A DNA stretch of 64,000 nt from assembly GCA_965637545.1 (NCBI GenBank), contig OZ281501.1, positions 6,572,001 through 6,636,000 of the forward strand, read 5' to 3'. The notes under the pieces are model-generated. The model ran no database searches. It saw only the letters and a list, made by a program, of their open reading frames with translations, and was not told where the DNA came from. Positions within the stretch are counted from its first letter, which is position 1. The number at the start of each line of letters is the position of its first letter. Source of the DNA: Phallusia mammillata. Its lineage: Eukaryota. The translations under genes were made by a program, and so were the position numbers. This document shows positions 9,501-57,900 of the stretch, piece after piece.

Positions 9501-12500
9501 TATTTTTGTCTTACGTTGGAATGCTTTTCATGTTTTGCATGATATTTATGTTCAGGAGCGTGACGTGGTATCACAATGTCGTACAGCCACAACTTGTCAT
9601 CCTCTATACGTCACACTTCTTTCAGTGGTTGCTTGCAGGTATTCATTACGTCATTGGTTTGCAATATGATTTGTGCTTGCACATCTTATGCTTTTGTACA
9701 ACGTATTGGTACCTATTGTCTACAATAACGGACGGAAGTAATTTCAACTGAAATAATTGACTTAAAACTCCGAAGTAATGTCGCCAGATACTTTACATAT
9801 TGAGTGATATTTTATGTATGTTAGTCATTAGGTAATCTAAACCATACTTCTTTTAACTGACTGAAATGTCATTGTTTTGTAACCTCATCCCGATCACGTA
9901 CCCCCTACTTAGGTATTTCGTACCCTTGGGGTTTACACATACCCTGGTTAAGAAATGCATTGTGTTAATGTCTGCACTGCAAAATTTCTTTAAACAACTT
10001 ACAAAGTTAAAAATGTCATCAAACGTTTATTTTCAGTCATTGGGCTGTTACAACATGCAATCATGCCTTTGATCTTTGATGCTGTTAAAGATACGAATTA
10101 CGAATCATATTAAAACTCCCACAATCAAAATAAACGTCTTCTGACTATATCCTTTCACCGTTATGTAACCAAAGCCTGCTGGCTAATAAGAATGCCACAA
10201 TTAAATACAGCTTTGCATTTTCGGGTGTAATATCTCTTTCAACAAATTGATTTTGTTTTTCAAATTGTTTTTCGTCCAGCGTCTGTGAGAAGAACATTTC
10301 CGAAAACTTTTTCCAAACTTGCCTGCGATCACGTGACCCTGTTGAACTTTATCAGCTGTTGTTACGCTCTGTTGAGCACCAGTTTGGATCCAAGATTACC
10401 AAAACCTGTTTGAAGCCATTCTTTCAGGTAAAGTGCTATTTTGCGCCAGCGTAGGTCCAGACGAGCTCGGTTAATCGCCTATCCCGTTTAATTACATATT
10501 GATCGTAAATCTCAACCGTTTGTGTGGAAAATGATCGATTAACTCGATACAAAGCTCGGCAAACTGGTTATGCTATTAACCGGATCCGACTAAATGTGTT
10601 AGGTTTAACCAGTTGCAAGGTCAAAAAGTTGCTGAACTTCTGATGACAACCGTATTATAGGTAACAATTGTGGCCAAAAATGTAGAAACTGTGGCAGTTT
10701 TTGCACTCAAACGCTCATGCGATAAAGAAGAAAGTTTATTATACACCCTAAGCCCACAGCTCATTCAAATAGTTAATAAAATTGTTTGTTTAGTTTCTTG
10801 CCTGTTCGCGCAATGGTTTATCGGAAACTGAAATATTGTCTCTTCTCCCTGATTTGACCTGGTGCAGTTGGATTGCAATACACAGACAACTATCTACATT
10901 CTGTGTCATCAAAGAATCGGTTGGACTTATCACTGTGCACAATTCGGAGGTAATTCCAGAAGTTTTGATAATAGTAATATGCTGTGAATAAAAATTATGA
11001 CAAATGGCAGAATGTTTTAAACGTTGGTGAGAAAAACTGGCTTTTATCTGTCTTTTAAACTGTGTGTAGTAATCACCAGTCACCAGAGTCTTAGTATGTA
11101 GCGAAAATCACAGACTATAAATTTTAATAAGCCTCAAGTCATCCACTGTTTATATACAGCAAGTATATGTACATCCTAAAAAAATGTGGATTATTTTAGG
11201 ATTATCAAAGTTTAGTCTGCTTGTGTTATATCTTTGTTTTTCGCAAATATGTCATGTTTTGAATTAAAAAAAACGGCTTTTAATCATTTTTTTGGAATTG
11301 CGACTTTTGTGGGCTAGAAATAAATGATTTGTCATTTGTGCTACTAATTGGCCGCAAACATTTGTACATGCTGGACAAAATCTACACAGATCGCAGCCGT
11401 ACTGTACGATCGTTACGTCAGCAATGACGTACATCTGAAGCGGTGTCGTCAGAAGATGCTCGCGTGGTTACAGAAGAGATACGAAGTTGTCGTCACACCT
11501 AGGAACAGCGACATGCTGCTATGGTTACTGCATAAAGAAGAAGATCGAGAAAAGTTGGGAGAGGTTGTCAGGTCACCTATGGTTTTTCATCTAATGTATA
11601 CAAGGTGTGTATATTTGCATGGATTATGGATAGAGATGATTTTTCAAAACAGCATAGCACTTGGTCTTATAAAACTAACTAGCTACTTTGAGGACCCATG
11701 TTTATTGATGTGTTTTTAAGTTTACTTAAATTATGGATAACATGTGCTATATAACCTTTTGACCCCCACTTAATCTGTGACTTCTCAAACGCGGCATGTT
11801 AAAACCATCTGAACAGTGTTCATCAGGAAAACGACCGACGCAATAGCCAAACAAATGGTTAACCCTAAAATCCAATTTGACACTAACATGGCAAACAAGG
11901 TTTACATTTGGACTAATTTATTCATGCAATGATCTTAAATGAGATAGAACTATGTTTGCTAAAGTTCTTCTATAATATAAGTGACGTTTGTCGTTGCTAT
12001 AGTTCTCGATATAGTGTTCTTTGCTAATCCGTAAAGTAATTGTTATCATTTCAAAATCAGTTTCGTACATTTGGTTGAAAAAAGTCTGTCACAATTTTCA
12101 TGCAGAGGTAGAGCTTGCGAAATCGTTCGTTTGTGGAATTACCTTAATGAAGAAAAACGGACAATCGCACAAGAGTATGCCAACGCTTTGAAGCTCGCCG
12201 AATCGAATGCGTCATCAGGTCGAAGCGATGACGTCACGATGAATGACGTAGCGCAGATGTATCAATCACTCGGGAGGTTTCTCAAAGATCTAGGACTAAT
12301 GGAAGAAGTATGATTTAACTTATGGCCAACAAATGGGTTTTCTTATTAATGCTGGTATTATTTTATCACACATAAAAATTTTGGAATAGATATTGTACTG
12401 CATTGACTTTTATGAGATTATTGTTGGCCCCTGTTCCTGATTTCAGACCACACTTTTTTTTCTTTTCTTTTTTTTTCTTTGAAGGCCAGTTAAAATATTC

Positions 12501-34006: not shown

Positions 34007-37000
34007 ATGCTAGCACAAAGAGTTATTTTATCAACGCTTTTATGTGTTTTCTTAGCACAAACGGTAAGTACAAATTTTTTGCCTAATTATTTCGAAAATT
34101 TATTCTGTTATTATTGAATGTAAGATTATGATTTACGTTCAATTCAAGTGAAAAACATTAAAATTTAATGACCGTAATGGGATTTTTTGTCATCATAATT
34201 TGAAAAATTATAATCTAAACAAATCAAAAAATATTAATTTTTGTTACAGATTTCAGCACTCTGTCCGTATGAGTGTGACTGCAGTGAAGAGCCTAGCCAC
34301 TGTGCACCGGGTATCAGTCTCGTGCAAGACGGCTGCAATTGTTGCAAGGTGTGCGCCAAACAGTCTGGGGAACAGTGTGACGGTCATGGGGCTGTTTGCG
34401 ACGAACATCGGGGCCTATTTTGTGACTTTTCAAGAGAGAGTTCTGGAGATTGGGGCGTTTGTAAAGGTAAGCCCATGCTTTTGATTATTTTTGACGCTTG
34501 CCACATTACCATTAGGTAGTAAAGGATCAGAGCAATCCGTAATTTTAAAATGTCTTTGCGACATCACAATTAAAAACGTGTTGTTTGTTTATTGTTAAAT
34601 TATTGAAATTTACAAAGTTTTTAAGTAGTTTATAGATTTTCGTATGTTGTTTTTTGGAAGTTTCACCCGTGTTTTGTTAAATGTTAAACAAATTGAATCT
34701 AAAATAATATTCGTATAACGTTCGCAATTATAAAACACAAAGGAGACCAACGAAATATTTTAAATTCCTATGAGAGAAAACGTTATATTTCTTTCTCAAC
34801 GGTCACCAGGCAGTAAACAAGCAAAAGTCACATTCCCCACAAATCGCAGCATACTTATAGCTCTGTTGACGTCAAACGACGTTGTCGCTCGAATGCCCCC
34901 AAATCGAACGGCCGTCGTTCCTCTCGGGACACAGAGATGATTGACAGCTTGTGTGTGACGTCACAATGCAAGCCCCGCCCTTGGTACAAAATAAACTGCG
35001 ACGTCCCAGCCGGGAGCCTAATATAAGGGAGAGTCACATTTGTTTACTTACCGGCTTTGGGCAACGTTCATTGGTTATGCCTCCGACATATTTGATTGAC
35101 TGATGGGGGTCGTGATACCAAAAGGGTCCGGTAATAACACTTTGGGGGCGGAGAGGGATTTTCAGGACACCGGGGCCTTTGAGAAACACCCCTAGATGGA
35201 ATGAGTCACCGTCAGGTACAAGCGTTTACATTTCATACCCACTATTAACATGTCGGCACAGGCTTATGTGTCATTATGGAGAAAATCTGAGATCAAAAAC
35301 AAGCGAACACAGAACTTTGGTTTCCAAGAAAAATTGCTGAGTTGCAAAATTGCGTAAAATAAGAAATGACGTAACCCTTTGTCAAACCTGTGTGGCCAAC
35401 ATGTGACACATGTTCCGTTTAAAATGTTTCGCTTTGGGCCGCTTTTAATGCCCGCGAACACGTTAGTGACGTTACGCATTGGCACACGCCTGACAGAAAA
35501 ATTTAAACGTGAGATAGAAAACTATTTTTATACAGTGGGCTAATCAGTCGACATTATTAAAAAGGCTACAAGCCGTGCACAACATTTACTCTCACCATTT
35601 CAGCTGAAGATTTGAGCACAAAAAATCGATTTTCGGGCAATTTCAAACAATTTGTATCCAGAAATTTACCTTCCTTGAACAATTAGATAATGCGGTTTCG
35701 TGATACGTTTTTCTTATATTTTAGCGCGTTCTGGACGACCATGCTTCGACGGTGACATTCGCATTCTTAGCGGTAGCATGGTGGAGCCATCTTGCAAGAA
35801 GAAGTGTTGGTGCCTTGATGGCTCTCTTGGTTGCATGCCACTCTGTCCTCACGAGATCCACTCACCAAGAGCTGACCTCTGTCCCAACGCGCGGCTCCAA
35901 ACCGTTCCAGGCGAGTGCTGCGACCAATGGGTGTGCGACACGCCGTCAGGTGACATCCGCGTTCTCCCATTGGACAATTTCTGGGACGAATACGTTTCGG
36001 AGGACGGGGGGAGATCGATGCCTGTTCAGGTGCCTTTAAGCGTGAACCGTGCTGAAGATTTGGAGGACATTGATGCAGATTGGAGTGAAGATGCTGATGG
36101 GGACTTCGAGTATCAATTCACCAGAAATCAAGATAGGAGCCAGGAGCAAGAGAGAGATTATCACTGGTTGAACAACATCATTCCTGGAGACAGAGATGGT
36201 AAGTAATGCCAGCGGCGTTGGTGCAAAATAAAACAAGGCGTAGGTGGAGAAACGGTTAACCAAAATGGTTCATCGTAAAACCTAGTTTGAAATTGAAAAT
36301 GTAATTGGAATTTTTGATGGTTTGATTTGACCAGAAGTAACCTTTTCCTAAACCGGCTGTACAAGAACATTATGTACGTGAATGATTCACATGTCTGCGG
36401 AATGTCAATTAGTCCCACCCGCGACGACATTTACTATTCCCAAATCGACCGTTTATAAAACATGTCGTCTGTTCTCCTAAAATGCGTGCGCAAAAAAATG
36501 ATTATTATTCGAACTATTTCGTCTTGGAAAAGGCCACCACGCGCCCAACGACATCATAGATTAGGATCACTAAAATATTGTCGGCGTACTTTACGCCCAA
36601 GACCAACCGCTCATTAGCGAGAAATTGCGTTCAACCTGCCCGTACCATCCCACACAGGGTACGTAAACGTCATTCAACGGCGGTTGGTAGTGATTTGTTC
36701 ATTTAGTCAACCCTTGTACATCTAATTCGAATTCGTGTTCGTTTGTACCCTGCTCCAAGGCTCCGCAGTGAACCCTTTACAACAGCCATACATAAATTCA
36801 ACCACTATAAATAGCTGGCCGCATGTCTGTGCGAAAATCCTGCAGGCCTTTTAACGCACAAGCGCCATTGCAACTCAGTTTGATTAACGTGGCAGCCGTG
36901 AACAGATCGGTTTGGAGTTTGAACAATGCCTGTGATTTTCTGACTAGCAATTTATCACAAAATGGTAACAATCACTCGTTTTACAAAATTGTTACGTTGG

Positions 37001-40000
37001 ACCATGCAATATGTATTGTAATTACAATCCAATACAACACAACACTTTGTTGTATAGATTTCTATGCATTAAGGCATTTGAAGTGTCAGTCGGTGCTAGG
37101 GTCAAGGTTTTCTAGTCAAGCGCTCGCTTGTGGAGTCGAAATTTTCTCATTTGAATATGGTCCGAGATGTAACGAGTAGTTTAGCGGTTAACGCTTACCC
37201 GACCAAATAGGTAAATATATGTGGCCGTGGCGAGACTGTCTTCCTTCGGCTCACTCGACCGTCGGAGTACAGGCATAGTAGAAGAATCAGACGAGACATA
37301 AGTCTAGGAATAGCCTGCATAACACCTGCGCTTTACGACTGCCAAATCGCTGATCTCTAACAAGAACAAAGCGATCTGAGTGCCTAGAGACAACAAATCG
37401 GTGTCGAGTTAAGGTAAAGCACTTAATTATCGAATTCCAGCTGTGTTGAACGCAAACCGCGCACTTAAAACAGCTACAGCGAACGCGCGTTTGTGATCGA
37501 AAATCACAAGCAGTAAACAAGCCAAGTGTTTGCAAACAAGAATAGTCGAGATTAAGTTGCGACCTCGACTACGGGATCTTGGTCACCGCTTTTGTGGTCT
37601 CTATTTATAAGCTCAACGTGTGCTTGGGATAAAGTTCCACCACACCAGGGCTCGACAAAGCGGTGCTCTGTTGTTAAAACCCGATCACTGGCCCCAAACT
37701 GACCGCAGAAGGAACGCGGCCTATAACTAATCGGTTGTTACGTGGATAGTTGGACCGGTCGGCTCTTGGCCACGGAATTCGACTAGAATTAGCGGCTGCT
37801 TCCAAGTTCAGTCCTGATGTCGCGTTTCTCCAGCTGCTAGGCGACGGGCGCTTAGCTTTAATCTGTAAACGAGCGCTTATTATGCGATTACGCAAGTTAA
37901 AAGCATAAAGGGCGCGGCTGCTTTCGAGTAACTCATACTATCCACCATTTTGTCTTCAACGAACCTGAGTGTCCGTTGGCTGACCGACGTAACCGACTCT
38001 CCACTTAAAAATCCGGCAAAAAATTGTTTTTTGTGTAATGCTGTGTTGGTTAATTATTTAGACTGCAGCTTGCAACCAAAAAAAGAAACATTGCAAACTG
38101 TTAACGCACTTGAAAAAAAATCTACAAATTTGTGATGAGCCCTGCATTAAATCTGCCAAACTGCCGTTCATATGCTGCGCTTCTTTTCGCAAATTCACAA
38201 AGTAAATGACGGAAAAAGTATACCGAGATAAACATTAAACATTAGTTTTGCTTGCGTTTGTTAAGGATCTTTCACATTAAATTGGTTATTTGTTTTGCAC
38301 AACCACAAAAGAAGTGGGTTTATGCTTTGTTTTTGACAATTAAAATTCAATTTTTTCGTAGAAATATCCAGTGTTCATAGACGCGAAGAAATGCCAAACG
38401 AGAAGCACGAACCTGTTTAGCATTTAAACCTCTATACCGCAGAACGCGCCTGCAAGCCACAGTCAACTATACACTTGCCTCTTATTTTGCAGCCGCCGTT
38501 CGTCATGCGCACGAAACACAACGAAGAAGATCACGCTGTAATACCAAGGCATCAGCGTGGAGTCACTGCTCCAAGTCTTGTGGCCTGGGTCTCTCCACTC
38601 GTGTCACAAACGACAATCCTCAATGCGCTTTGGTGCGAGAGTCAAGACTCTGTGAGCTGCGAACATGTGAAGAGAATTTATACAAACCCAAGGTACGTGA
38701 AATTTTGGAAATAGGAGACTTGCTGAAAACACGAAAGAAGCGTGTTTAGTATTTTTAATTCTTGCGATTTTAATAGGTTTAAAAACCATTTGAAAGCTGC
38801 AAGCTAATAAATAATTAGCTGCAGACAGTACACACTGTTTCGATCTATAACGTCTCATCAGTGCAGCTGGTAACAAAAGATAGGCCGCTGGTGTAGTCAT
38901 GCAACGACACTCCAGTTGGTTGTGAGCAACATGTTAAAAAGCCATACCTCACCTATTCTGTTCGATGCCACAACTGGGTATGCCACAAAATCAATTTGTT
39001 TTGGGAAATGGCGTCTGGATCAAACACCGTTTAAAATTTATCCAGTTAACCCAACTTTAAAATGCAAAATGTCGTTTTAAAATTACGCGCTTTTTATTGA
39101 ATACTCCTATCTTCCATAATCTTGAATAGTTAACCAACAATATAAAGCTGCATGTTTGAGGATATTAGGGTTAGAAGACTTGGTTTCTCAGATGAAAATT
39201 TACCAAGCATACGTAATGCATTAGCCAACGTGACATGTTTGCGGTGCCACGACGGCAAATTTGAGATTCGACCACGAGTGGTGACCGATTCGCTGTCAGA
39301 GCACTCTATAATTTACGGTTGTCGCGCGATCACGGTCGGGGACAAAAAACAAACTGCGCGAGGTTACAGTGCGAAATTCCTCGCATATTTTGCAATTGGA
39401 CGTCGGTCCAAGCACTGACGTTACGACTTTTCAATGCGTTTGCTTGGATGTCAGATTCCGAATGACGGAATGTCACACAAACAAGTCATGCTGTTACAAC
39501 CTGTTGAAAAGCTAGTCCACCAATGCGAAATTTCGGACAAATGTTGGGTTTCCGAGCGGCCTTACATTTAGTGGCAAGTTAAAAATGGGGGAAGTCATTT
39601 TGGTGGTTAACAAACAAATGTTTTTATGATATGGTTGTAAACGACGTGAAGAAAATAAGTCAGTTGGGACCGGCAAAAATAATCAAAATACGGTGGTAAA
39701 TTCAATTAATAGCTTGTGTTACGTTACGCATCTATAAACCCTTCTCATTCACTTCATATACTTTCAAGTATCAAATAAAACAGGCACCGAAAAACCTTAT
39801 GAAGCGTGAAGCTTCATTAAACACTGAAAACTTATCATTGGCATTTGAGTTAACCTGAAAATGTTCCAGTCGCTTCATTTCGTTTCAAGCTTGTAATTTT
39901 TGTTTCCAGAGAGGTAGGCAGTGCAGCAAACCAACTCGTCGGTCACGCCGAAAGGTGACTGTTACATATGCCGGGTGCAGCAGTGTGAGAAAGATCAAGC

Positions 40001-40422
40001 CCAAGTATTGTGGAGAATGCCGCGATAATTCAAGGTAAATTGGTTCGATTTCATATGCAACTTGATTGTGTTCACCAATTGTTTCGCAAAACCTCTATAA
40101 CATAAATCATGTTTAAAAGGTAAACCCCCCTAAACTCAATACATCACTCCTATAGTGCTATATATATACCACTTGGAAAAAAATCGTACAAAACGCTTAA
40201 CCGTACTGCTTTAAAATTTCCAGGTGCTGCACACCGACCGCTACAAGGAATCTACGCCTGCGGTTTAGGTGCGGTGATGGCCGGTATTTCACCAAGACGA
40301 TGCTGATCATCAAGAACTGCGAGTGCAGCCGTAACTGCGCGGATTCAAGCGCAAGGACTTCGCCAAACCACATCAGACTTTCATTGTACGGCGATATGCT
40401 GCGTAAGACAGAGGAGCGGTAA
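34007..40422 (+). CDS. CCN: CCN family matricellular protein A (SP-IGFBP-VWC-acidic hinge-TSP1-CT), 6 exons, 423 aa
   Basis: Exons 34007-34063 (signal peptide MLAQRVILSTLLCVFLAQT), 34250-34466 (IGFBP, 12 Cys, GCNCCKVCAKQ), 35725-36198 (VWC, 10 Cys, plus acidic hinge), 38493-38692 (TSP1, WSHCSKSCGLGLSTRV), 39910-40034 and 40224-40422 (CT: YAGC..YCGEC / CCTP..FRC..CECSRNC). Phases 0-1-1-0-2 are consistent; sum 1272 nt. The vertebrate paralogue (CCN1-6) cannot be assigned. Confidence 0.95.
38814..38870 (-). ncRNA. Type I hammerhead ribozyme motif with GUC cleavage site, antisense in CCN-A intron 4
   Basis: Minus strand AGCTGCA-CTGATGA-GACGTTATAGATC-GAA-ACAGT(GTGT)ACTGT-C-TGCAGCT: intact core, 7-bp stem I, 5-bp stem III, stem II G-C/A-U/C-G with a bulged A and a GUUAUA loop; predicted cut 38824/38823. 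Confidence 0.82.
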
Positions 40423-44387: not shown

Positions 44388-44840
44388 TTACATTACTCTT
44401 CGCAAATTTGCAGTAGCTTGTAAAATAGTGCCAGTTGACCTGTTGCTATAATTCGGATTCGCCCGTGCTTGTCCAGAACTCATCGCTGTGGAAGACGTAG
44501 CATGGAGCTGCGACAAGTACTGAAGAAAGTCGAGTTCACTGTTGAACTGCTGCGTGAAGGCATCGCTTGTCGAGATCCTACGAATTAACTGTTTTACATC
44601 ACGTTTGTTCATGGTATCTGCTGGGACTTCTGGCTCTACTCCAGTGGTTTGACACAAGTCTTCTAGAATTTGATCCTCTTTAATTCGAGGAGTCGATGGA
44701 GCAATTGACGAGCGGCGCCGGATTCGATTCGGGTGGTTCCGAATCATAAGGAGGTCGGCATCGCGTCGGACAACATCTTCTTTGTTTGCTGAAACTTTGC
44801 GGGGACTTTGACGATTGTCATGTGTCCAGCAATTTCCCAT
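44388..44840 (-). CDS. Orphan protein exon (148-150 aa), putative dual N-terminal acylation
   Basis: Longest GC-richer ORF in AT-rich surroundings; starts MGNCWT (G2, C4, T6); acceptor TTATTTTCAACACAG just upstream (44859-44858) and donor-like GTAATG at 44396; no family recognised. Confidence 0.6.
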   Translation of the reverse strand: MGNCWTHDNRQSPRKVSANKEDVVRRDADLLMIRNHPNRIRRRSSIAPSTPRIKEDQILEDLCQTTGVEPEVPADTMNKRDVKQLIRRISTSDAFTQQFNSELDFLQYLSQLHATSSTAMSSGQARANPNYSNRSTGTILQATANLRRVM

Positions 44841-47800: not shown

Positions 47801-49694
47801 ATGTCTGGTAGTATAAATGATTCACCATAAATACAAAACACTTGGTAGTACCGGAACTGATCTATGTAAAAAAAACAGTCATCTCGAACAACAGTATAGA
47901 AAGCAATATCCTAAAGACAAATACACCCAATTGACCCAACTTGAAACCGCACATTCACTGAAGCGAAAATACCAGTAGGAAGCAGTGTCAGTGAACTTTG
48001 TAGGATATAAACAAGGGTTGTTAGGACATGAATCTCCGGAGCTTTGATATCGAAGCCTCCGTCTCTGTCCGCTTTGTGCCCTAAATCCGCGGCTTATCCG
48101 AACAACACCCGGTTGAACGTCGCTCGCAAGACCGCGGATTCGAGGGCAAGCTGACAACTTTATGTGATTGAAAGGCGTGATAATTTATTTACGCCGTAAA
48201 CCACCCCTTACAAGAGGGGCTCCCCTGGGGTGCTAATCGGGCCTCGCTTCCTCGCAGGCCCCTTTCGTCAACACGGCGCCCCGCCTAAAAAGAGGGGCTT
48301 TAAATGCGTGACGGATGGAAGAAATGAAAGACGTCGTAAGTGAAGTTTGCGCTGGGTTATAATTAGTTCAGGGAACATTTTGCCAGATTGCAATCGCGAA
48401 AATGGAGGGGCTGAACGCACACGTTTTCAAGCATATTTCCGCAAGATACGCCTGCCTGGTGTAACAAACGTCACAGATGCCTATAAAGTGTGCATATTTC
48501 GGATTTATCCTACCAGTTCGAGTGACAGATGCGGTTAGGGGGCGTGACAACAGGTAATGGTAACCGTGACGTCAATTGTGACGACAGCAAAGGACATCTC
48601 ATTTTGAATAATGACGTCAAAATAGAGAGAATTTTGCGGCTTTGCATGATCTTTAATTCAATAAGAACGTTAAAGGCTGCACACATTATACGATGTATGT
48701 GTAAATATAGTCTATAATACTAAATGTACAAAACAAATAGTGGTATCAGCTGGAGGTTCCAAGCTGGGTTAAATAGTATTTAGTCCGCGGCAGTCAGTGG
48801 GTGGGTCGGACCGCTTTTTGACAAATCTGTCAAGTTTTCTATTTTTAACACAGCTTCAAAGGCAGAAAGGGTTACGGCAGCAGGTCAGCATGTACCTTCA
48901 ACACATTGGCCTCGGTGCAGATCAGAATCCTTCTGTAGCTGCTTTTCACGCCCTGTAACGAGCAGTCACTCATTTCCATTCGTTCAGGACGCCTGGTGCC
49001 CGCGACTTGAATTTGCGAGAAAAAAAAGCCGTGGTGTAAAAGGAAGCTGGCTACTTAAAAGCAATACAAAGGGCAGCTAAGGCCGCGACGCGCAAAAAGA
49101 CTCGTTTAATTTCAGTGCTGGCGACGTCATGTCGCAGGGGACCAGAGAGCAAGCTATTAGACGCAAAACATCGGCGCCGTAGTCAACATTACGGCGCGCT
49201 GCGGTGGTGTTTTTCCGGCGGAATGGCTTCATCAAGCCTGGGGTCGCAGGCTCGATTAGAGCGGAATTTTTGTTGAGATTGCGGACATTAATGGGATAAT
49301 GAGAGGAATTTCCGATCAAAGTAGATGACATTCGCGTGCGAGTTCTTAACCTAGCAGGAAAGTTTGAAATCAACACGTGAAAGAAAAAAATTGAAAAATG
49401 CGTGCCACGCCAAATAGCCTCGATTATTGCTGAGGTTGGCATAAATTCCAAGGCATCAAATGCACTATGCGCACAACACAGGTTTGCGGCAAACTGACTT
49501 TTACGCGCAATTAGAGTGGCAGATCGGGGATTTGTGCTTCACTGGCTCGGCAGACTTCGCACAAACAGCACTATTAAAGGTTTTTACTTACCAGTGATCT
49601 CTTCATGCCGTTGCAGGATTGTTTACAAACGCATATTATATAACTGTGCTTACTGTCAGAAGCCGGTGTAGAATATTAATCTGAAAACAATAAT

Positions 49695-52600
49695 ATGGGG
49701 CATTCAGCACGACGACCGATCAGTATCAAGGCTGTCATATCAACAGCTGTAATCACCACCTTTGTGTTTCTGCTGCTTCAAACGCAAGAGATTGAAGCAG
49801 GAAGGAACAGATCGTCCAAGGGCGGCAGGCGCGGCAAAAACTCGTGCAAGAAACAAGTTTCGCCATGGAATGAATGCTCGAAGCCTTGCGGTCTTGGGTT
49901 ATCATCGCGTGTCAAGAAGAAGAGACATTGCAAATCGAAGCTCGAGACCAGGCTCTGCATCGTTCGACCCTGCGAAAATGACACCAAGGTAAGTTGTGTC
50001 GCAAATTTTTGATATGCAAGTTGCCTACTGAACATATTTCGGTCTTGACAAAACATATGGCTAAATAAAGAATCGAAAGTAGTTACAGGTTCCGTTTGCG
50101 TGTGTAAATTTCGGTTTGCCTAATATTTCGCTAGTGTTTTTTTTTTTCAAATTTCGTTTATTGTAAGGCTGCAGTCGGCCAAACACCGTCCCGAAAGTTC
50201 AAGCCCAAAACCCAGGCCGTACGCAAATTTTACACAAAAATCAGTCCGACTAACGTTTGAGGGTTAGATTTTGGAAAAGAAATTGCGACCCAAATGTAAA
50301 GTCGGGCCCGAATCAAGCTTGTTTTAATGTCCGGGGCGACTCTGCGCTTCATTTCACCCGTTCAAGTGGACTAAAAACAGTTTCAGACGCCTCAGCGCTA
50401 CTACCCAAGCCCCTAGTGCGGAGAAGTACGAAGATTTCTATTGTGCATTACCATATCACATAATTAAATTCAAAGACATCGTTTTTCATAACAGACATTG
50501 ACGAATTGAGGTTGAATTTGCCACTGGTCCCGGAAGTCAGTGAGAAATATGTTCGTTGCCACATAAACAATTTTCATTGAAAACGTGTTTACAAAATAAT
50601 GTAACCTTTACAGTTGTATATAGAGCTTGCTCAACAAAGATTGTTTATAAGTTACGGGAATTTGGCTTCAATTTGCGGGGAACAAAACCGCTGTTGACCC
50701 GATAACACCACGGAGCAGTAACATGAATGACACAATAACCTTGTTGGTTAGGTCAAAATCGTATTAAGCCCGTCTAGCGCCATGATTAGCACAAACTGTA
50801 AACCGGTTTATCGAGCCTTCCCATGTACCAAATTTACGCGCCCTGCTGATTCCCAGAAACACAGACAAAAGTCCAAATTGTTTACATTAGTAAAGGGCAT
50901 GTTTTGTAAAATACAGATTGAGGGCTATTGAGAAGAAGCTTTTGAAAAATAAAAGTTTTGAACACGTCCGCTTAAACTTAACAAAACAAGATTGATTTTA
51001 ACGTTTTAAAACCACGAAAGTGTGTTACGATTTGAGATGAAAACCAAAAAACACAATTCCATTGTTACGGATGGCATGCCAGTTTAAAGTGAATATATGA
51101 ACAAAGATAGCCAAAAAGACATATTGCGTGGCGATTGGAGTTCATTCAAAGCGCAAGTCAAATCTCCAAGCGGTTAGTAAAGTCAATATTTCAATTAAAG
51201 TGTCAAATGTTTAATCATCATATATGCGTATGTGAAACTACAAACTGAGTGATTGAGAGTGCTATCTGATCGCTTTTTGCACAAAACCATTAATCAGTTT
51301 AATTGGTGATTCACCGTTTTACTCTTTAACATTTTAAAAAGAGCAGTATTCCTTTAACATTAAGTTAAGCGTGGTGGTAAATACATTTGCATATGCGAGC
51401 AATCATCAAAGTTCTACATCAAAGTATACGTTAATGTGCGCATCGCAGTCTGGTATGCGAAACATGGTGGTTCGGTACAACGCCCTACAACGAGCGATTT
51501 CATTGATGTCGCGTGCCACACCTACGGACGATTAACGGCGGCTGAGCGGATGAGAAGGCCACATAAATCCGTCTGTACACCCAGGGGTGGCAGCGTGCAT
51601 GATATCATTTCTTTTCATGGGACCTTGGCACACAAGTGCGATATAGGTTGCGATTGTCGTTGCATAAACTAAATTTGGAAATAATATGAAAATCCATTTG
51701 GAAATGTTTGGCCAAATGTAAAGTTTTAACTGTAACTTTTGAATTATTTTTATGAAACAAATGCGTTACAAAGATAAAAAAAATCTAGTTTAGAAGTCAA
51801 TTGGTGTATAGGCCTGCGAATGTTTTGACGATTTTAAGTTATTTTGAGAAAAATGTGCTTTAAATATTGTTTAAGGGCAGAAATGGCGGACTGTGGTTTC
51901 GCATCAATTAAAATCTCAACCAGTTACTAAGCAAATTCAATACCTTCCGTAAAATTGCAATAAAACTTTCGTGGGGGTCGGTTGAACAGAAACTCATTGT
52001 TCCAATCGCAGTAGCGGCCGATTCAAGAAGGTGTTCAGCGAGGTTTCAACTGGTGGGTTTTTTCGACCGATTTTGCTTCGCAGCAGGCAAAACAAACAGC
52101 AAAAGCAATGAAAATCGAATCTTTCACGGGATCGCAAACAAACCAGATGTAACGGGACGTTCATAGCCGACGCATGCCCAAGAACCGATTTACGAGCAGC
52201 ACAATACATTGTCAACAAAACCCATTTGACTTACCACCTGCGAAATCTCTTAAATCAACCCCCTGCCGAGTTGGAGACAAAATTGCGTAGAATGGATGCT
52301 TTGTCGAAACTTGACTTTGCTTCGATTTTATTACGTTTTGACACAATAAAATCCAATACATTGGTGTTTGGCGATTCCAAGAATATTTATTCAAAATTTA
52401 AAAGATGGAAAGTCAAATAGATTTTTTCATGAAAGTTTATCGTTTTTCACCATTACCTCGGTACTAAATAATATATTTGTAAACATCGTTTTTCAACAAA
52501 AACGAACATACAGTTTCGTGCATGGTCAACACCAATTTTCAAAAAGACCAATGTACCTATACAGTTACACATATAAAATAGTTCAATACCTATGATCACG

Positions 52601-54941
52601 AAATTTAAAAAAAATTGTTTCATGTCTTTTCGGTAAACATGGCTCATCTGCAAGCGCATGTCGTGGTCGCCATGCGGCAAGCAGCAAAATCATCTTTTCT
52701 ACGCTCTGTCATCAGTCGCAGCTTCCACTTGCATTCAGGCGCCATTTGGCAACGCCGGCGCCTTCCCTACGCATTCCTGGCGCTCTTCTGCCAGTCACAT
52801 GAGAGCGCCGGCAAGTACGTACGGCGTCGTCGGGTCGAAGTTAAACACCAGAGTTTGTCCCCCTTTCGCCGCCGAAAGCCAATAAACAGTCATTAGGCGG
52901 CGGTCTTGGTGCCAAGGACAGACCCAATCTTGGGCGTTGAAAGCTCCCATTGGAAGATTTGACTGCAAACGCGTCAATGCCGTGTATCAATAAACGATGT
53001 GGCTTAACGAGTAAATACAAAATAAATTGTTTACGTGCTTTCGGAGCATGGTGATGACGGGGCACGTCACAATTGACTTGCGAATCACACGTAAACTTTA
53101 TACAGCATGTAATGAGTTTTCCTAAGTTTCAACTGCTTGTCAATTATGTCCATTCATAGACAATAGCGCTGCCACGTAGCAATGCGCCTCTCCGTCAACA
53201 AAACGCCACTGACGTTTGAGCATAATTCCATTGCATGCACGAGCGTCTTTCGCATTGGACAAACAACGCAATAGAAACCACAAGGCATCGGCGCGGAAAG
53301 ACGGATTTAAAATTACGGGTTCCTGCACTTTTTGCCCGATCCCGATTTCCGGGAAAGGAAAAAGATACCTGGACGAGCTTGGGCGATGACGTCATCGTTT
53401 GATCGAAAGCGACGAGGGAATTAGTTTCGGCACAGTGACGTATCCGTGGCAGGGGAATTGAGAGGATGTAACAATATCCTAACCAGCACAGTATATGTTG
53501 ACGATTACTCACTGAATGCGGCTGTGGGAATTTGCCTTGACGCACAAATGAGAAATATCTTAGTAGTTTTTCGCACCCACAATTATCACCATATCCTCGT
53601 TAATCTAACGGGGTAATACCATATTTGGTTGTTTGAGGCCTATAGGTTAAAACGTTCGTTTGCAAATCAAATTGAAAATTGACAAAACCACATTTTAAAG
53701 CAATAAACAAAAAATTCACCGTAATACAGTGACACTAATGTTTACCAAAAAATAAATTGCTCGACCAAATCTTTTGGTAAATAATTTTAACCACTGCTAA
53801 TACTAGAATGATTTCCATTGGCGATTTTCTTAAAAACCTAATTCTTAAGCACAAGTATATTTTGGTCGAATTACAGATCGACACCAGTGGGAATAGGACA
53901 AATAATGGCGGCTTCGAGCAAAAAAATAAATCTGCCGTAACTATTAACGCACCAATTACAGAAATAACTTCATGTTTGGCCATGACCGTGAAGGGAATTT
54001 TGTCATAAAACCTAAAACGAATTCAAAAAGGCCTTAAAAATACATATTAACTATATTAGTGATTTAGACTTTAGTCGACGTACAAACAAATAATATTTTA
54101 TCTTTTAGAAGCTTCCTACAACCAGGGCTTGTCAGCCAAACCTACCCAGAAAAGGGAGGGAATATATCAAGTACATCAAAGCAAAGAGTGAGAAAAAATA
54201 CAAGATGAGATATTGTGGTTCTTGCACTGACACAACCAAGTAAGTGATTCAGAAGTAAACTATGACCACAGTGCGTTAAGGCGCCCGTATATAGATGTGA
54301 AACTGTAGATGTTTAAACGTGATTCAATGTACAACAATTTAATTAGGTGTCGAAAATACCAATACGATTAAAAAAAACAGTAGCTTTACCAAAATTCTGT
54401 AGAAAATCTCTTATCTTTGTCATGTATTTTATTTATAGTGTGTTTTCCCCAAATCAAATGCTATATTTTCGGCGCTTTTGTTTCAATTAGGTTGCGTTAC
54501 AGGTCGAAAATGAAATGTCATAAACAGAAAAACAATGATTTCATTAAACATCTGAAGAAATCGTTGTTTTTCTCAAATGAACGCCTATGTTTCCCGCTAT
54601 TTAAGTTTCATGTATCATATACAAAAAAAAGAAAGATTTTTTTCTTTTGTGCTTCGTATTTATATTATTAAACACGTGCCTACACGTGCCTACACGTGCC
54701 TACACGTACCTACGCTTTGAGTGAGTGCTAAGGCCAAATTGTCACCAAAAATATTTTTTATAGATGCTGCACGCCACTTAAGAGCAAGACCAAAAAGATC
54801 TGGTTCGCTCGCGCAGATGGAACACGGTTCTCTAAGAAGATGATGTTCATAAGAAAATGTCACTGCCACCGGGACTGTCCGACCGACCTGGTTCCGGTGA
54901 TCCCGCTTCAACAAGACACGATCCGGCCGCCGAGTCAGTGA
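49695..54941 (+). CDS. CCN: CCN family protein B, apparently N-terminally truncated (SP-TSP1-CT only), 3 exons, 200 aa
   Basis: Exons 49695-49988 (signal peptide MGHSARRPISIKAVISTAVITTFVFLLLQTQEIEA, then TSP1 CKKQVSPWNECSKPCGLGLSSRV..C..ETRLCIVRPC), 54109-54239 (CQP..YKMRYCGSCTD), 54764-54941 (CCTP..MMFIRKCHCHRDC). Phases 0 and 2 match gene A; in-frame TAA at 49677-49679 upstream of the ATG; TATATAA at 49637-49643. Confidence 0.88.
53619..53628. promoter_or_regulatory. CArG box (SRF site) in CCN-B intron 1, near a perfect CRE (53387-53394)
   Basis: CCATATTTGG matches CC(A/T)6GG exactly. Confidence 0.35.
54673..54712. repeat. 10-bp tandem repeat ACACGTGCCT x4
   Basis: Directly visible; each unit carries an E-box CACGTG (last copy degenerate); the flank resembles about 56605-56630. 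Confidence 0.85.
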
Positions 54942-57900
54942 CGCCCCGGTGACAAGCGAACCGAATGTACCGAGCGGTCTCGGCCGGACCTGGGTCAGAT
55001 ACGGTTGACTGCGCCGCTGACATCCGGCCAATAATGACGACGCTGCAAAGGCCGAGCGCAAAACTCATTGACAAATGCACTTGTTACGTTACAAACACTG
55101 CGCACGCGAACAAATTTCAGTGGACCTCGGCGGACTTTATCCAATTTGTTATGTCTTGTTTTCGTGTCTTTCCAAATTTATTTTTTTGCTTTTTGGGCGA
55201 TAGTAGTGGCTAATGTAAGGATCCGGGGCAATCTTTTACGTTAATTCGTCTGTTTAATTGCTTTAAACAATTTCAAAAAAATTCTGCAAAGCCTGCCAAT
55301 AATTACTGTAAACTCAGGCAAATTACCATAGTGGATAGGATTGGATTGGCTTCGTATTTGACTGACACTGCTCACAATATAGTGCGAAGTGACAAATAGT
55401 GACAGGGCTTATAACCGAGCTTTAAAAGTTTAAACAGCGAATGCCAAGTTTCTTCCCTAGATGCCCCAGTAATGAAGATGACATTTCGGTCGGGTACGAC
55501 CAAATATACATCACACGGTAAAAATACAACCGAAAATCCATCAACGAATTCCAAACGTTTGATCCACGCAATAAAAGATAAAGCCACTGAGTCAGCTGAA
55601 TGTCAGACATACAAACTCAAGCTAATGACCTTTACTTCAAGAAAACAAGTGATATGTCGTCTAATCGGCAGTTGACATCGCCAAGCCTCAACACACCCCG
55701 AACCCTAATCTTACCCTTGTACGTTATCAGGTGGGCTGAGTTCGTTCACACGCCACAAACAGCGCAACAGTATTCGACAACCCCTTGCTCAAAACGCGAC
55801 CATCAGAAAACTGAAGACATGAGCCTAAAGTAATTTGTTACATTTCAAACTTACAGGGACCCGGAGGGAGCCCCCGAAGACCGTTGCCATTTACCCAACG
55901 CGTCTGTTATCACCCGCTGGGGCACAAGCGCAAATTGCTTCACTGGGTTACTGTTGGTCTTGCTTGGGGCACGCACGTTGGTCCTATTTTGTCAACGGTA
56001 ATTTAAATCCGCAAAATGGGTCCTGACTCAAGGAGTGAGCCTTGCACGCGAGCAAGTAACTTTCGACATACATTAGACATGCTTTCTTCGGCTACGAGGA
56101 CACAGAAAAACAAAGCTCCGACGCTCTTCGACCACAATGCATTTCTTCCACAATTGTAACCGACGCGTTAATTCATTTTGTCAACGTTACCGGCGCCTAT
56201 TTTACAAACGTTTTGACCACAACTGCTCAAATTTTGTGGAGAAATAGACTACAGAAACAACTTACCACTGAGCAATCTTATACGAATGTACAAATGATTT
56301 GACTCATGAAACAACTTTTACTTTGTGGTTTACCTGTTTTCACCAACTGATTATCATTCCGTTTATCAACCAAACTTTAAATAAAGGAATTACCAACAAG
56401 TTTCTGGTTATTTTAGAAATAATATTTATCGCCTTCTATCATTTTTGTTGTAGACCATTTGGCTCCCTTCTGTTGGTATAATGTGCACCTTACTGTTCCT
56501 ATTATTGTTGTTATTCTTTCTGTTTCTTGTATTTTCTCCTGTTTTGGATACAATCTTATTGTACATATTCTTTTTCTTATGTGCTTGGTATTTATTTGAT
56601 TGAACACCTGCCTACGTTTTAAGTGAGTGCTATTGTTGAAATGGTAATCTCGTTATTGTCTTTTGCCCCAAGTTGTCAATAAAACTTTGTCTACAAATTT
56701 TATCTTGTGAAAAAGTTTCCACGCACAAGGGCAAGAAGTTGGAACTAAAATGGTAGTTTTAATACAAGCGCTTTAAATGAGGGTATGGCTTAACGTAGGA
56801 TCCGTACAACTAGTTTTAATACGGCTAACCAAAATGCCAGTTTTGACAAACTTAAATTACATTTGTATTCTAGTTTTGACAAACTTTGAATACATTTGTA
56901 TTTTAAAGCAAAGGGTATATTTGCTGCTGCCAAGCATAAATGTACACACCACTTATTGAGATTTTATAATTCTTTGCATTTAGTAAAGGATAAAATAAAA
57001 GTATTTGCCCAAATTAGTGCCACACCATTTCAATGCTCGGTCAATACATTGGATGGTATTACTTAACCCCTTAACATAGCTGTGGGTTTTCACCACAATA
57101 GGAAGGCTAAGAATCATAAGAGGTTTTTGTAAAATTTGGAATAGGGCCACAACCGAAGTGACGGATAGAGCACAGTCTCCCATCATTTCTCAACCATTGC
57201 TATTTCAACGCGTCTATTCAGAAACAAATTTAAAACAAATAAACTTCCGTCGGCCCCTTTACGGGTGAACGAAGTAGCCGAAATTTTGACTCCGAATAAC
57301 CTTTGAATTTGATACAGAGGCATATGTACAGCTAGATTCGCTTAAGGTTTTTCCGTGAAAGACAGGCGATCGAAGAAGGCACGTACCGACAATGCAAGGA
57401 CTGCAGGTGGTCCACAAAAACCGGAAACATTTCAGTGAATATTCTCCTCATGTGAAAAGTCCCTTAAATTCGATTTAAGTTCATACACGAAGTTTCAGAT
57501 TCGCTTGGAAAGCTGTCAAAGGGCCTGTCAATAACAGACAGAGACTACAGGTGGTCCACAAGCGCAGTAAAAGCGCATGTGTGTTATGTTACGGGCTGAC
57601 GAACATATCCCCTCGTGATGGGTGTCCAACGCAACGTAGTCGCAGTTTCTAAAAAGGCGCGTGTGTCATACGGTTGTAGAGGATGCCACACACAGAGCTT
57701 CTAAACTGTCAAGAATCTATGCAACCTGATGGACTAAGGAATCCTGACTTTTTGGAACTGGAAGATTGGTTTCAAAATTTGTAACTCAGCTACTAGGAAA
57801 GAACAGAAACGCTCTACCCCCTTTTGAATTCACACAATAGGTTTAAAGCGGTGCGGTATCAGCAAGTATAAAACCCTGATGAACCAAACCATAGCGTAAA

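Follow-up and report, generated by a model that had tools for sequence, protein, structure and literature searches.

Vertebrate CCN1 to CCN6 all encode an IGFBP and a VWC module, and CCN5/WISP2 lacks the CT domain instead (PMC6610741, Table 1). For CCN2, the fragment made of TSP1 and the cystine knot (TSP1-CK) has been reported as bioactive and the full-length protein as inactive (PMC10326224). Both statements served as premises in a sequence-only reading of a 64,000-nucleotide stretch of Phallusia mammillata DNA (assembly GCA_965637545.1, contig OZ281501.1, positions 6,572,001 to 6,636,000 of the forward strand; hereafter the window), and both agree with the cited sources. We find that the window holds a separate, expressed and constrained gene, here termed CCN-B, whose protein consists of a hydrophobic leader, a basic linker, a CCN-type TSP1 domain and a C-terminal cystine knot (CTCK), without IGFBP and without VWC. 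Like the C-terminal fragment of vertebrate CCN2, CCN-B has TSP1 and the cystine knot in this order and is strongly basic; but whereas that fragment is cut from a four-domain precursor at the hinge, CCN-B is encoded directly and has its own predicted signal peptide.

Several other CCN relatives likewise lack whole modules, among them CCN5/WISP2, Drosophila Ccn and Echinococcus 'CCN2'. CCN5/WISP2 is without CT, whereas CCN-B is without the N-terminal half; the Echinococcus protein is tabulated as signal peptide, TSP1 and CT, which is the layout of CCN-B (PMC6610741, Table 1). The cestode and fly proteins are domain losses in independent lineages, compared with CCN-B by their tabulated layout. 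The four-domain CCNs (CCN1-4, CCN6 and CCN-A, which stands in tandem with CCN-B in the window) share with it the TSP1_CCN and CTCK domains and two intron positions and phases, but CCN-B has no IGFBP, VWC or acidic hinge, and eight rather than ten knot cysteines.

The closest described gene is Ciona Ctgf (CCN family member 2; KH.C9.172; LOC100184755; XP_002130917), which has the three exons, the intron phases and the leader-linker-TSP1-CT layout of CCN-B, lacks the same two knot cysteines, and is preceded by a full CCN gene and, next, an opposite-strand gene. Its hydrophobic core comes after 31 residues rather than 12, and its linker is shorter; the Ciona protein (207-214 residues) is 43% identical to CCN-B over 194 residues (E 5e-52). 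In a 2019 survey of the family, XP_002130917 is listed without signal peptide, IGFBP or VWC, with TSP1 at 59-99, CT at 118-188 and, by SMART, a transmembrane segment at 25-46; 'some ascidians', according to the survey, lack IGFBP and VWC (PMC6610741, Table 1). A 2024 paper, in the parts of it considered here, describes mosaic notochord expression of the Ciona gene from mid to late tailbud, dissects its enhancer and, under the name Ctgf/ccn2, draws a comparison to Ctgf of vertebrates; these passages do not mention the missing half (PMC11728170).

The published primers map into exon 1 and intron 1 of the Ciona half-CCN, and so show that the notochord 'Ctgf' is this gene, the orthologue of CCN-B. 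On the Ciona locus (L001), the 'Int 1' forward primer lies at 10120-10141, inside the signal-peptide codons of exon 1, and the reverse primer falls within intron 1 (11239-11258); the enhancer has its 150-bp core at 10656, and the published 5' fragment starts from 8666, just upstream of the half-CCN ATG. The full-length CCN gene of Ciona lies about 5 kb upstream of the half-CCN and is distinct from the gene named Ctgf. As the Ciona notochord 'Ctgf/ccn2' is a truncated paralogue, claims of a conserved notochord function of Ctgf should allow for that. The fragment published as the 'Ctgf intron 1' enhancer (L001 10120-11258) begins within coding exon 1.

CCN-B is therefore not new: its protein has been deposited, its truncated layout tabulated, and its Ciona orthologue studied as 'Ctgf'. 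An exhaustive profile search with exon 1 recovered a public Phallusia protein (CAB3267754.1; UniRef A0A6F9DWC9, 'connective tissue growth factor') that is CCN-B except for Q192E; for two species, this short form of the protein is what RefSeq and cDNA-derived entries show. At residue 192, in the unconserved tail, the public protein has E (LQEDT) and the window Q (LQQDT), which is probably an allelic difference. A search of the literature on 'Ci-CTGF' and the accession numbers returned nothing beyond the 2019 survey. What is added here are the RNA contigs without an upstream exon, the identification of the notochord 'Ctgf' with the tabulated Ciona protein, the conserved three-gene arrangement, and the breadth and constraint of the clade to which CCN-B belongs (the B clade).

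Gene structure, transcripts and the missing N-terminal half

CCN-B has three exons on the plus strand, with GT/AG at all borders, and its spliced open reading frame (ORF) of 603 nucleotides encodes 200 residues. Its parts are as follows:

49601..49694, + strand: 5' untranslated region; RNA contigs start at 49601, 49632 and 49646; contains a TAA at 49677 and no ATG
49695..49799, + strand: start codon and predicted signal peptide, residues 1-35, with the 16-residue uncharged core AVISTAVITTFVFLLL; predicted cut after EIEA
49800..49844, + strand: basic linker GRNRSSKGGRRGKNS, residues 36-50; a K/R-rich linker is present in every orthologue
49845..49988, + strand: TSP1 domain (residues 51-93, six Cys) and end of exon 1, supported by Pfam, PDB 6rk1 and the structure model; GT donor, phase 0
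49989..54108, + strand: intron 1, 4120 nucleotides, phase 0; joint seen in four runs; its Ciona counterpart carries the published notochord enhancer
54109..54239, + strand: exon 2, first part of the cystine knot, with Cys 1, 3 and 4; Cys 2 replaced
54240..54763, + strand: intron 2, 524 nucleotides, phase 2; RNA contig joint
54764..54941, + strand: exon 3, second part of the knot, tail and TGA stop, with Cys 5, 6, 8, 9 and 10; Cys 7 replaced
54942..56283, + strand: 3' untranslated region, extent inferred; contigs of 1994 and 2014 nucleotides reach about 1.2 kb beyond 55090

No clear poly(A) signal was found near the contig ends. Exon 1 had been read as running from an ATG with an upstream in-frame stop through a hydrophobic leader and a basic linker into a six-cysteine TSP1 module, and each of these elements is present in the sequence: the ATG stands at 49695, an in-frame TAA lies 18 nucleotides 5' of it at 49677, and there is no ATG between 49601 and 49695. 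The two CT exons, which had been said to share their intron phases with CCN-A, have exactly the expected borders, both genes being interrupted in phase 0 after the TSP1 exon and in phase 2 inside CT. The same two phases recur in the B-type genes of Ciona and of the tunicate loci L002, L003, L007 and L008, all of which we rebuilt as three-exon genes.

RNA contigs from four runs in three studies have their joints exactly at 49988 to 54109 and at 54239 to 54764. These contigs start at 49601, 49632, 49646 and 49646, in each case with their own first letter (50-95 nucleotides 5' of the ATG), and they show no loose ends and no upstream joint.

A tblastn search of the window with CCN-A returned its own exons and those of CCN-B, and between the two genes (40.4-49.7 kb) only stop-containing noise with E above about 5. 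In the same interval, the IGFBP motif pattern GCxCCxxC and the VWC pattern CCxxC had no match on the plus strand, and the cysteine-rich ORFs had no match in Pfam. An IGFBP module, part of the canonical four-module plan, is absent from the CCN-B protein, from its transcript and from the 9 kb upstream; VWC and the protease-sensitive hinge are absent from CCN-B as well, the acidic hinge being replaced by the 15-residue basic linker. Given the null results of tblastn, motif and Pfam searches, the 5' ends of the contigs, and the gene that intervenes between CCN-A and CCN-B, we judge the N-terminal half to be truly missing. The sequence-only reading, which proposed an independent gene directly encoding leader, TSP1 and CT without IGFBP or VWC, and which suggested the tblastn search, is in this respect borne out by the ORF, by that search and by the contigs. 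Two of the ways in which, by its own account, it might fail concern transcripts: splicing of upstream IGFBP or VWC exons onto the TSP1 exon, which is not seen in the contigs of the four runs, and absence of expression, which the spliced contigs of three studies contradict.

Within intron 1 there are further short contigs with depth of about 3, three from run X1 (51488-51651, +; 52044-52297, -; 53242-53418, -) and one of similarly low depth from run X2 (53516-53668, +). Near 53388, the contig at 53242-53418 includes TGACGTCA as a complete palindrome, and it also holds two more TGACG half-sites. These contigs may represent unspliced RNA, or else an intronic regulatory or transcribed element.

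Domains, descent and constraint

The TSP1_CCN domain, the gene structure and the placement in the tree indicate that CCN-B belongs to the CCN family by descent. Exon 1 matches Pfam PF19035 TSP1_CCN at E 9.4e-15 (54-55 bits against a cut-off of 27), and the TSP1 domain matches that of CCN3 (PDB 6rk1) both in sequence (E 4e-11) and in fold (TMt 0.81, root-mean-square deviation 1.7); exon 3 matches Pfam Cys_knot at E 7e-5. An AlphaFold model made with a 60-row alignment has a mean predicted local distance difference test score (pLDDT) of 78, with values above 90 in TSP1 and of 88-97 in the knot, and its best matches among solved structures are VWF CTCK (4nt5), CCN3 TSP1 (6rk1) and then Norrin. 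The knot retains eight of the ten CTCK cysteines and folds as a CTCK in the model.

In all six complete genes the hydrophobic core is followed by Ala at position -1 and a K/R-rich linker, and the six TSP1 and eight knot cysteines (14 in total) are invariant. Of the ten cysteines in a CCN knot, all six genes are without Cys 2 and Cys 7, so that the joint loss dates to the origin of the B clade. By our mapping, the lost pair would correspond to C273-C307 of human CCN2. The Cys 7 position falls in the hairpin turn 159-162 of the CCN-B model, which fits a finger-tip location. In human CCN2, C273-C307 is reported to join the finger tips and to have been seen by mass spectrometry in the CCN2 fragment (PMC10326224). 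CCN-B, unlike that fragment, lacks a disulfide of this type.

Besides the complete genes, B-type exon-1 ORFs occur as P0002 and P0176. A word-indexed protein search with the 200-residue CCN-B found only itself, and one with a profile of B-type pieces found only exon-1 ORFs, in metagenome-style assemblies. P0050, at first sight a further half-CCN, belongs to a full-length gene, whose TSP1 exon had been read together with in-frame sequence of the intron.

A maximum-likelihood tree built from the TSP1-CT region, in which a tick CCN serves as outgroup, places the six B genes within the full-length CCNs of tunicates, as a clade with support of 100/100 whose stem is long (0.91). Across the mature region the proportion of nonsynonymous differences (pN) is 0.13-0.35, far below the saturated proportion of synonymous ones (pS, 0.67-1.0), and the ratio of nonsynonymous to synonymous substitution rates (dN/dS), computable for two pairs only because synonymous sites are saturated, is 0.07 and 0.11. 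These values indicate that the B clade is under purifying selection rather than in neutral decay. The search for orthologues with dN/dS below 1 that the sequence-only reading had called for thus yields tunicate genes of the predicted layout, and neutral evolution of the ORF, which it had listed as a possible refutation, is contradicted by both measures.

Proposed activity and alternative readings

Mature CCN-B has a net charge of +33 (+31 to +35 across orthologues) and an isoelectric point (pI) of 10.2, so that its description as a very basic half holds. The corresponding values in CCN-A are +26 and pI 10.1 for the TSP1-CT part, -16 and pI 4.05 for the hinge, and +2 and pI 7.63 for the whole mature protein, a contrast that fits masking of the basic half by the N-terminal half together with the acidic hinge. 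The uncharged cores of the leaders span 13-17 residues across six orthologues, which is the length of a signal peptide and not that of a membrane span.

We consider it reasonably probable that the product of CCN-B is a secreted, cationic matricellular protein that acts like the CCN2 TSP1-CK fragment. Exon 1 carries the start codon and joins the basic linker directly to TSP1, and its leader would be a signal peptide that is cut off; after this cleavage, the cationic protein would bind heparan sulphate and matrix around the secreting cells, which in Ciona would be notochord cells after intercalation, and would act there as an exposed C-terminal CCN half without the masking IGFBP-VWC-hinge half. 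Cleavage of the leader and secretion of the product, as well as heparin binding and constitutive activity, are what we infer from sequence features. By analogy with CCN2, the 'pre-activated ligand' proposed earlier would fit both the charges and the absence of a hinge, and is a reasonable hypothesis.

Several points weigh against this proposal. Signal peptides do not usually have so long a charged stretch before the hydrophobic core as most orthologues do (about 20-45 residues, against 12 in Phallusia). With Pfam Cys_knot, whose cut-off is 24 bits, the Phallusia knot reaches 19.5 and that of the Ciona orthologue 26.5. Dimerisation or receptor use may be altered by the lost finger-tip disulfide. 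The labelling of the four runs as RNA is a guess, for which the spliced joints argue, and assembled contigs lose rare isoforms, so that they describe the dominant form and a minor transcript with upstream exons is possible.

The absence of the finger-tip disulfide from every orthologue and the long stem branch of the clade would also suit a secreted antagonist or decoy, one that takes up heparan sulphate, integrin or other CCN sites and damps the neighbouring full-length CCNs. Precedents exist, in that the TSP1 of CCN5 alone is reported to counteract CCN2, and inhibin and Lefty are antagonist knot proteins (PMC9860493 and PMC10326224). However, CCN-B has, in well-conserved form, the two domains of the CCN2 fragment that is reported as active, and the data examined give no sign of receptor-site loss, which makes an antagonist rather unlikely.

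Also unlikely, and slightly more so, is that the hydrophobic segment remains uncleaved as a signal anchor, which would make CCN-B a type II membrane protein displaying TSP1-CT at the surface and possibly shed via the linker. This would account for the survey's listing of the Ciona orthologue with a transmembrane segment and without a signal peptide (PMC6610741, Table 1), for the K/R-rich 22-43 residues before the core in five of six orthologues, and for the moderate constraint on that stretch (dN/dS about 0.3-0.4 between L003, L007 and L008). The uncharged cores, however, are short for a membrane span, and the Ala at -1 in all six orthologues, the mostly small or aliphatic residue at -3 and the linker that follows form the pattern of a signal-peptidase site.

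That the gene model is incomplete, with IGFBP and VWC exons lying farther upstream or shared with CCN-A and spliced on in some transcripts, seems very improbable. Contigs are blind to rare isoforms, and the corresponding TSP1 exon is internal to a full-length gene in Styela and at L004; but in Phallusia the in-frame stop lies just 5' of the ATG, the four contigs all start within 49601-49646 with neither joint nor loose end, the 40.4-49.7 kb interval carries no IGFBP or VWC signal, a conserved opposite-strand gene stands between CCN-A and CCN-B, and RefSeq and cDNA-derived entries agree on the short protein in two species. A transcribed but functionless partial duplicate in decay, to which the two lost knot cysteines and the Cys_knot score under the cut-off might point, we count as refuted by the conservation data, since six species keep the frame intact and all 14 remaining cysteines, pS is saturated with pN far below it, synteny is kept, and a notochord enhancer dedicated to the Ciona orthologue is on record (PMC11728170).

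Whether four-domain CCNs are pro-forms and the TSP1-CK half the real ligand is a matter of debate, to which CCN-B is relevant: a half-only gene under purifying selection stands here next to a full-length one with which it can be compared. In Ciona, it is feasible to knock out both genes and to compare both proteins.

The locus, its neighbours and a possible origin of the leader

Two further genes of the window lie upstream of CCN-B:

34007..40422, + strand: CCN-A, full CCN gene with all four domains, six exons and 423 residues, about 9 kb 5' of CCN-B
44388..44840, - strand: intervening single-exon gene of 150 residues, starting MGNC, found in the same place in Ciona and L002

CCN-A matches Pfam IGFBP (E 3e-12), VWC (E 3e-5) and TSP1_CCN (E 7e-19), and it also has a CT domain, a signal peptide and a long acidic hinge. 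CCN-B is 38% identical to its residues 259-396 (E 1e-32), in keeping with the earlier description of a same-strand tandem with a full CCN. The proposed origin by tandem duplication stands in part: the tandem location agrees with it, but CCN-A cannot be named as the parent, because the tree does not resolve the exact full-length sister of the B clade. The identity of 38% and the presence of B-type genes in at least six tunicates indicate that the duplication behind CCN-B is old, not recent.

The intervening gene has an orthologue at the same position in Ciona (42% identity, E 5e-32), and the order of full CCN, minus-strand gene and half-CCN is common to Phallusia, Ciona and L002. It encodes about 140-150 residues in three tunicates (L001 7405-7824, -; L002 5178-5372, -) with the shared motif RNHPNRIRRRSS(I/V)AP(S/T)TPRI...PAD.M, and it matches no known family in Pfam or the protein atlas. 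At the Clavelina locus with a CCN-A-like gene, neither the intervening gene nor a half-CCN was found within 10 kb downstream, and the Styela locus holds a full-length CCN gene only.

In the full-length CCN genes of Styela clava (L005 13372-13457) and of a related assembly (L004 9286-9440), the intron that precedes the TSP1 exon ends in a stretch that is open in the frame of that exon for 46 and 84 codons, respectively, and that in this frame encodes an ATG, basic residues, a hydrophobic run and an Ala just before the acceptor, resembling the leader of a half-CCN. This may be chance, since T-rich splice tracts translate to hydrophobic residues in any frame; it may also mark an alternative first exon or an intronic promoter. 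Either way, it shows how a partial duplicate that kept the intron end could gain a signal peptide. We raise, as a tentative possibility, that the half-CCN was born from a partial duplicate comprising the last three CCN exons and the 3' end of the preceding intron, whose T-rich tract would have become the signal-peptide core and whose acceptor region the cleavage site, and that Styela-type genes may make a short TSP1-CT isoform. If so, a single locus of the Styela type would yield both a pro-form and a free C-terminal half, jobs that Ciona and Phallusia would have split between two genes. A candidate relic of the acceptor in Phallusia exon 1 ('gcag' before GA, in the phase and spacing of the CCN-A acceptor) was given little weight, as AG is frequent in the linker and the 20 nucleotides upstream are purine-rich.

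At L003, L007 and L008, this gene order is not seen, and a DSS1/SEM1 gene sits 5' of the half-CCN instead. The order in question is that of full CCN, minus-strand gene and half-CCN. BCD1 (zf-HIT) and DSS1/SEM1 recur beside CCN-A- or B-type genes in differing order (L001 20816-22426, -; L009 1-2337, -; upstream at L003, L007 and L008), which suggests an old neighbourhood that has since been rearranged.

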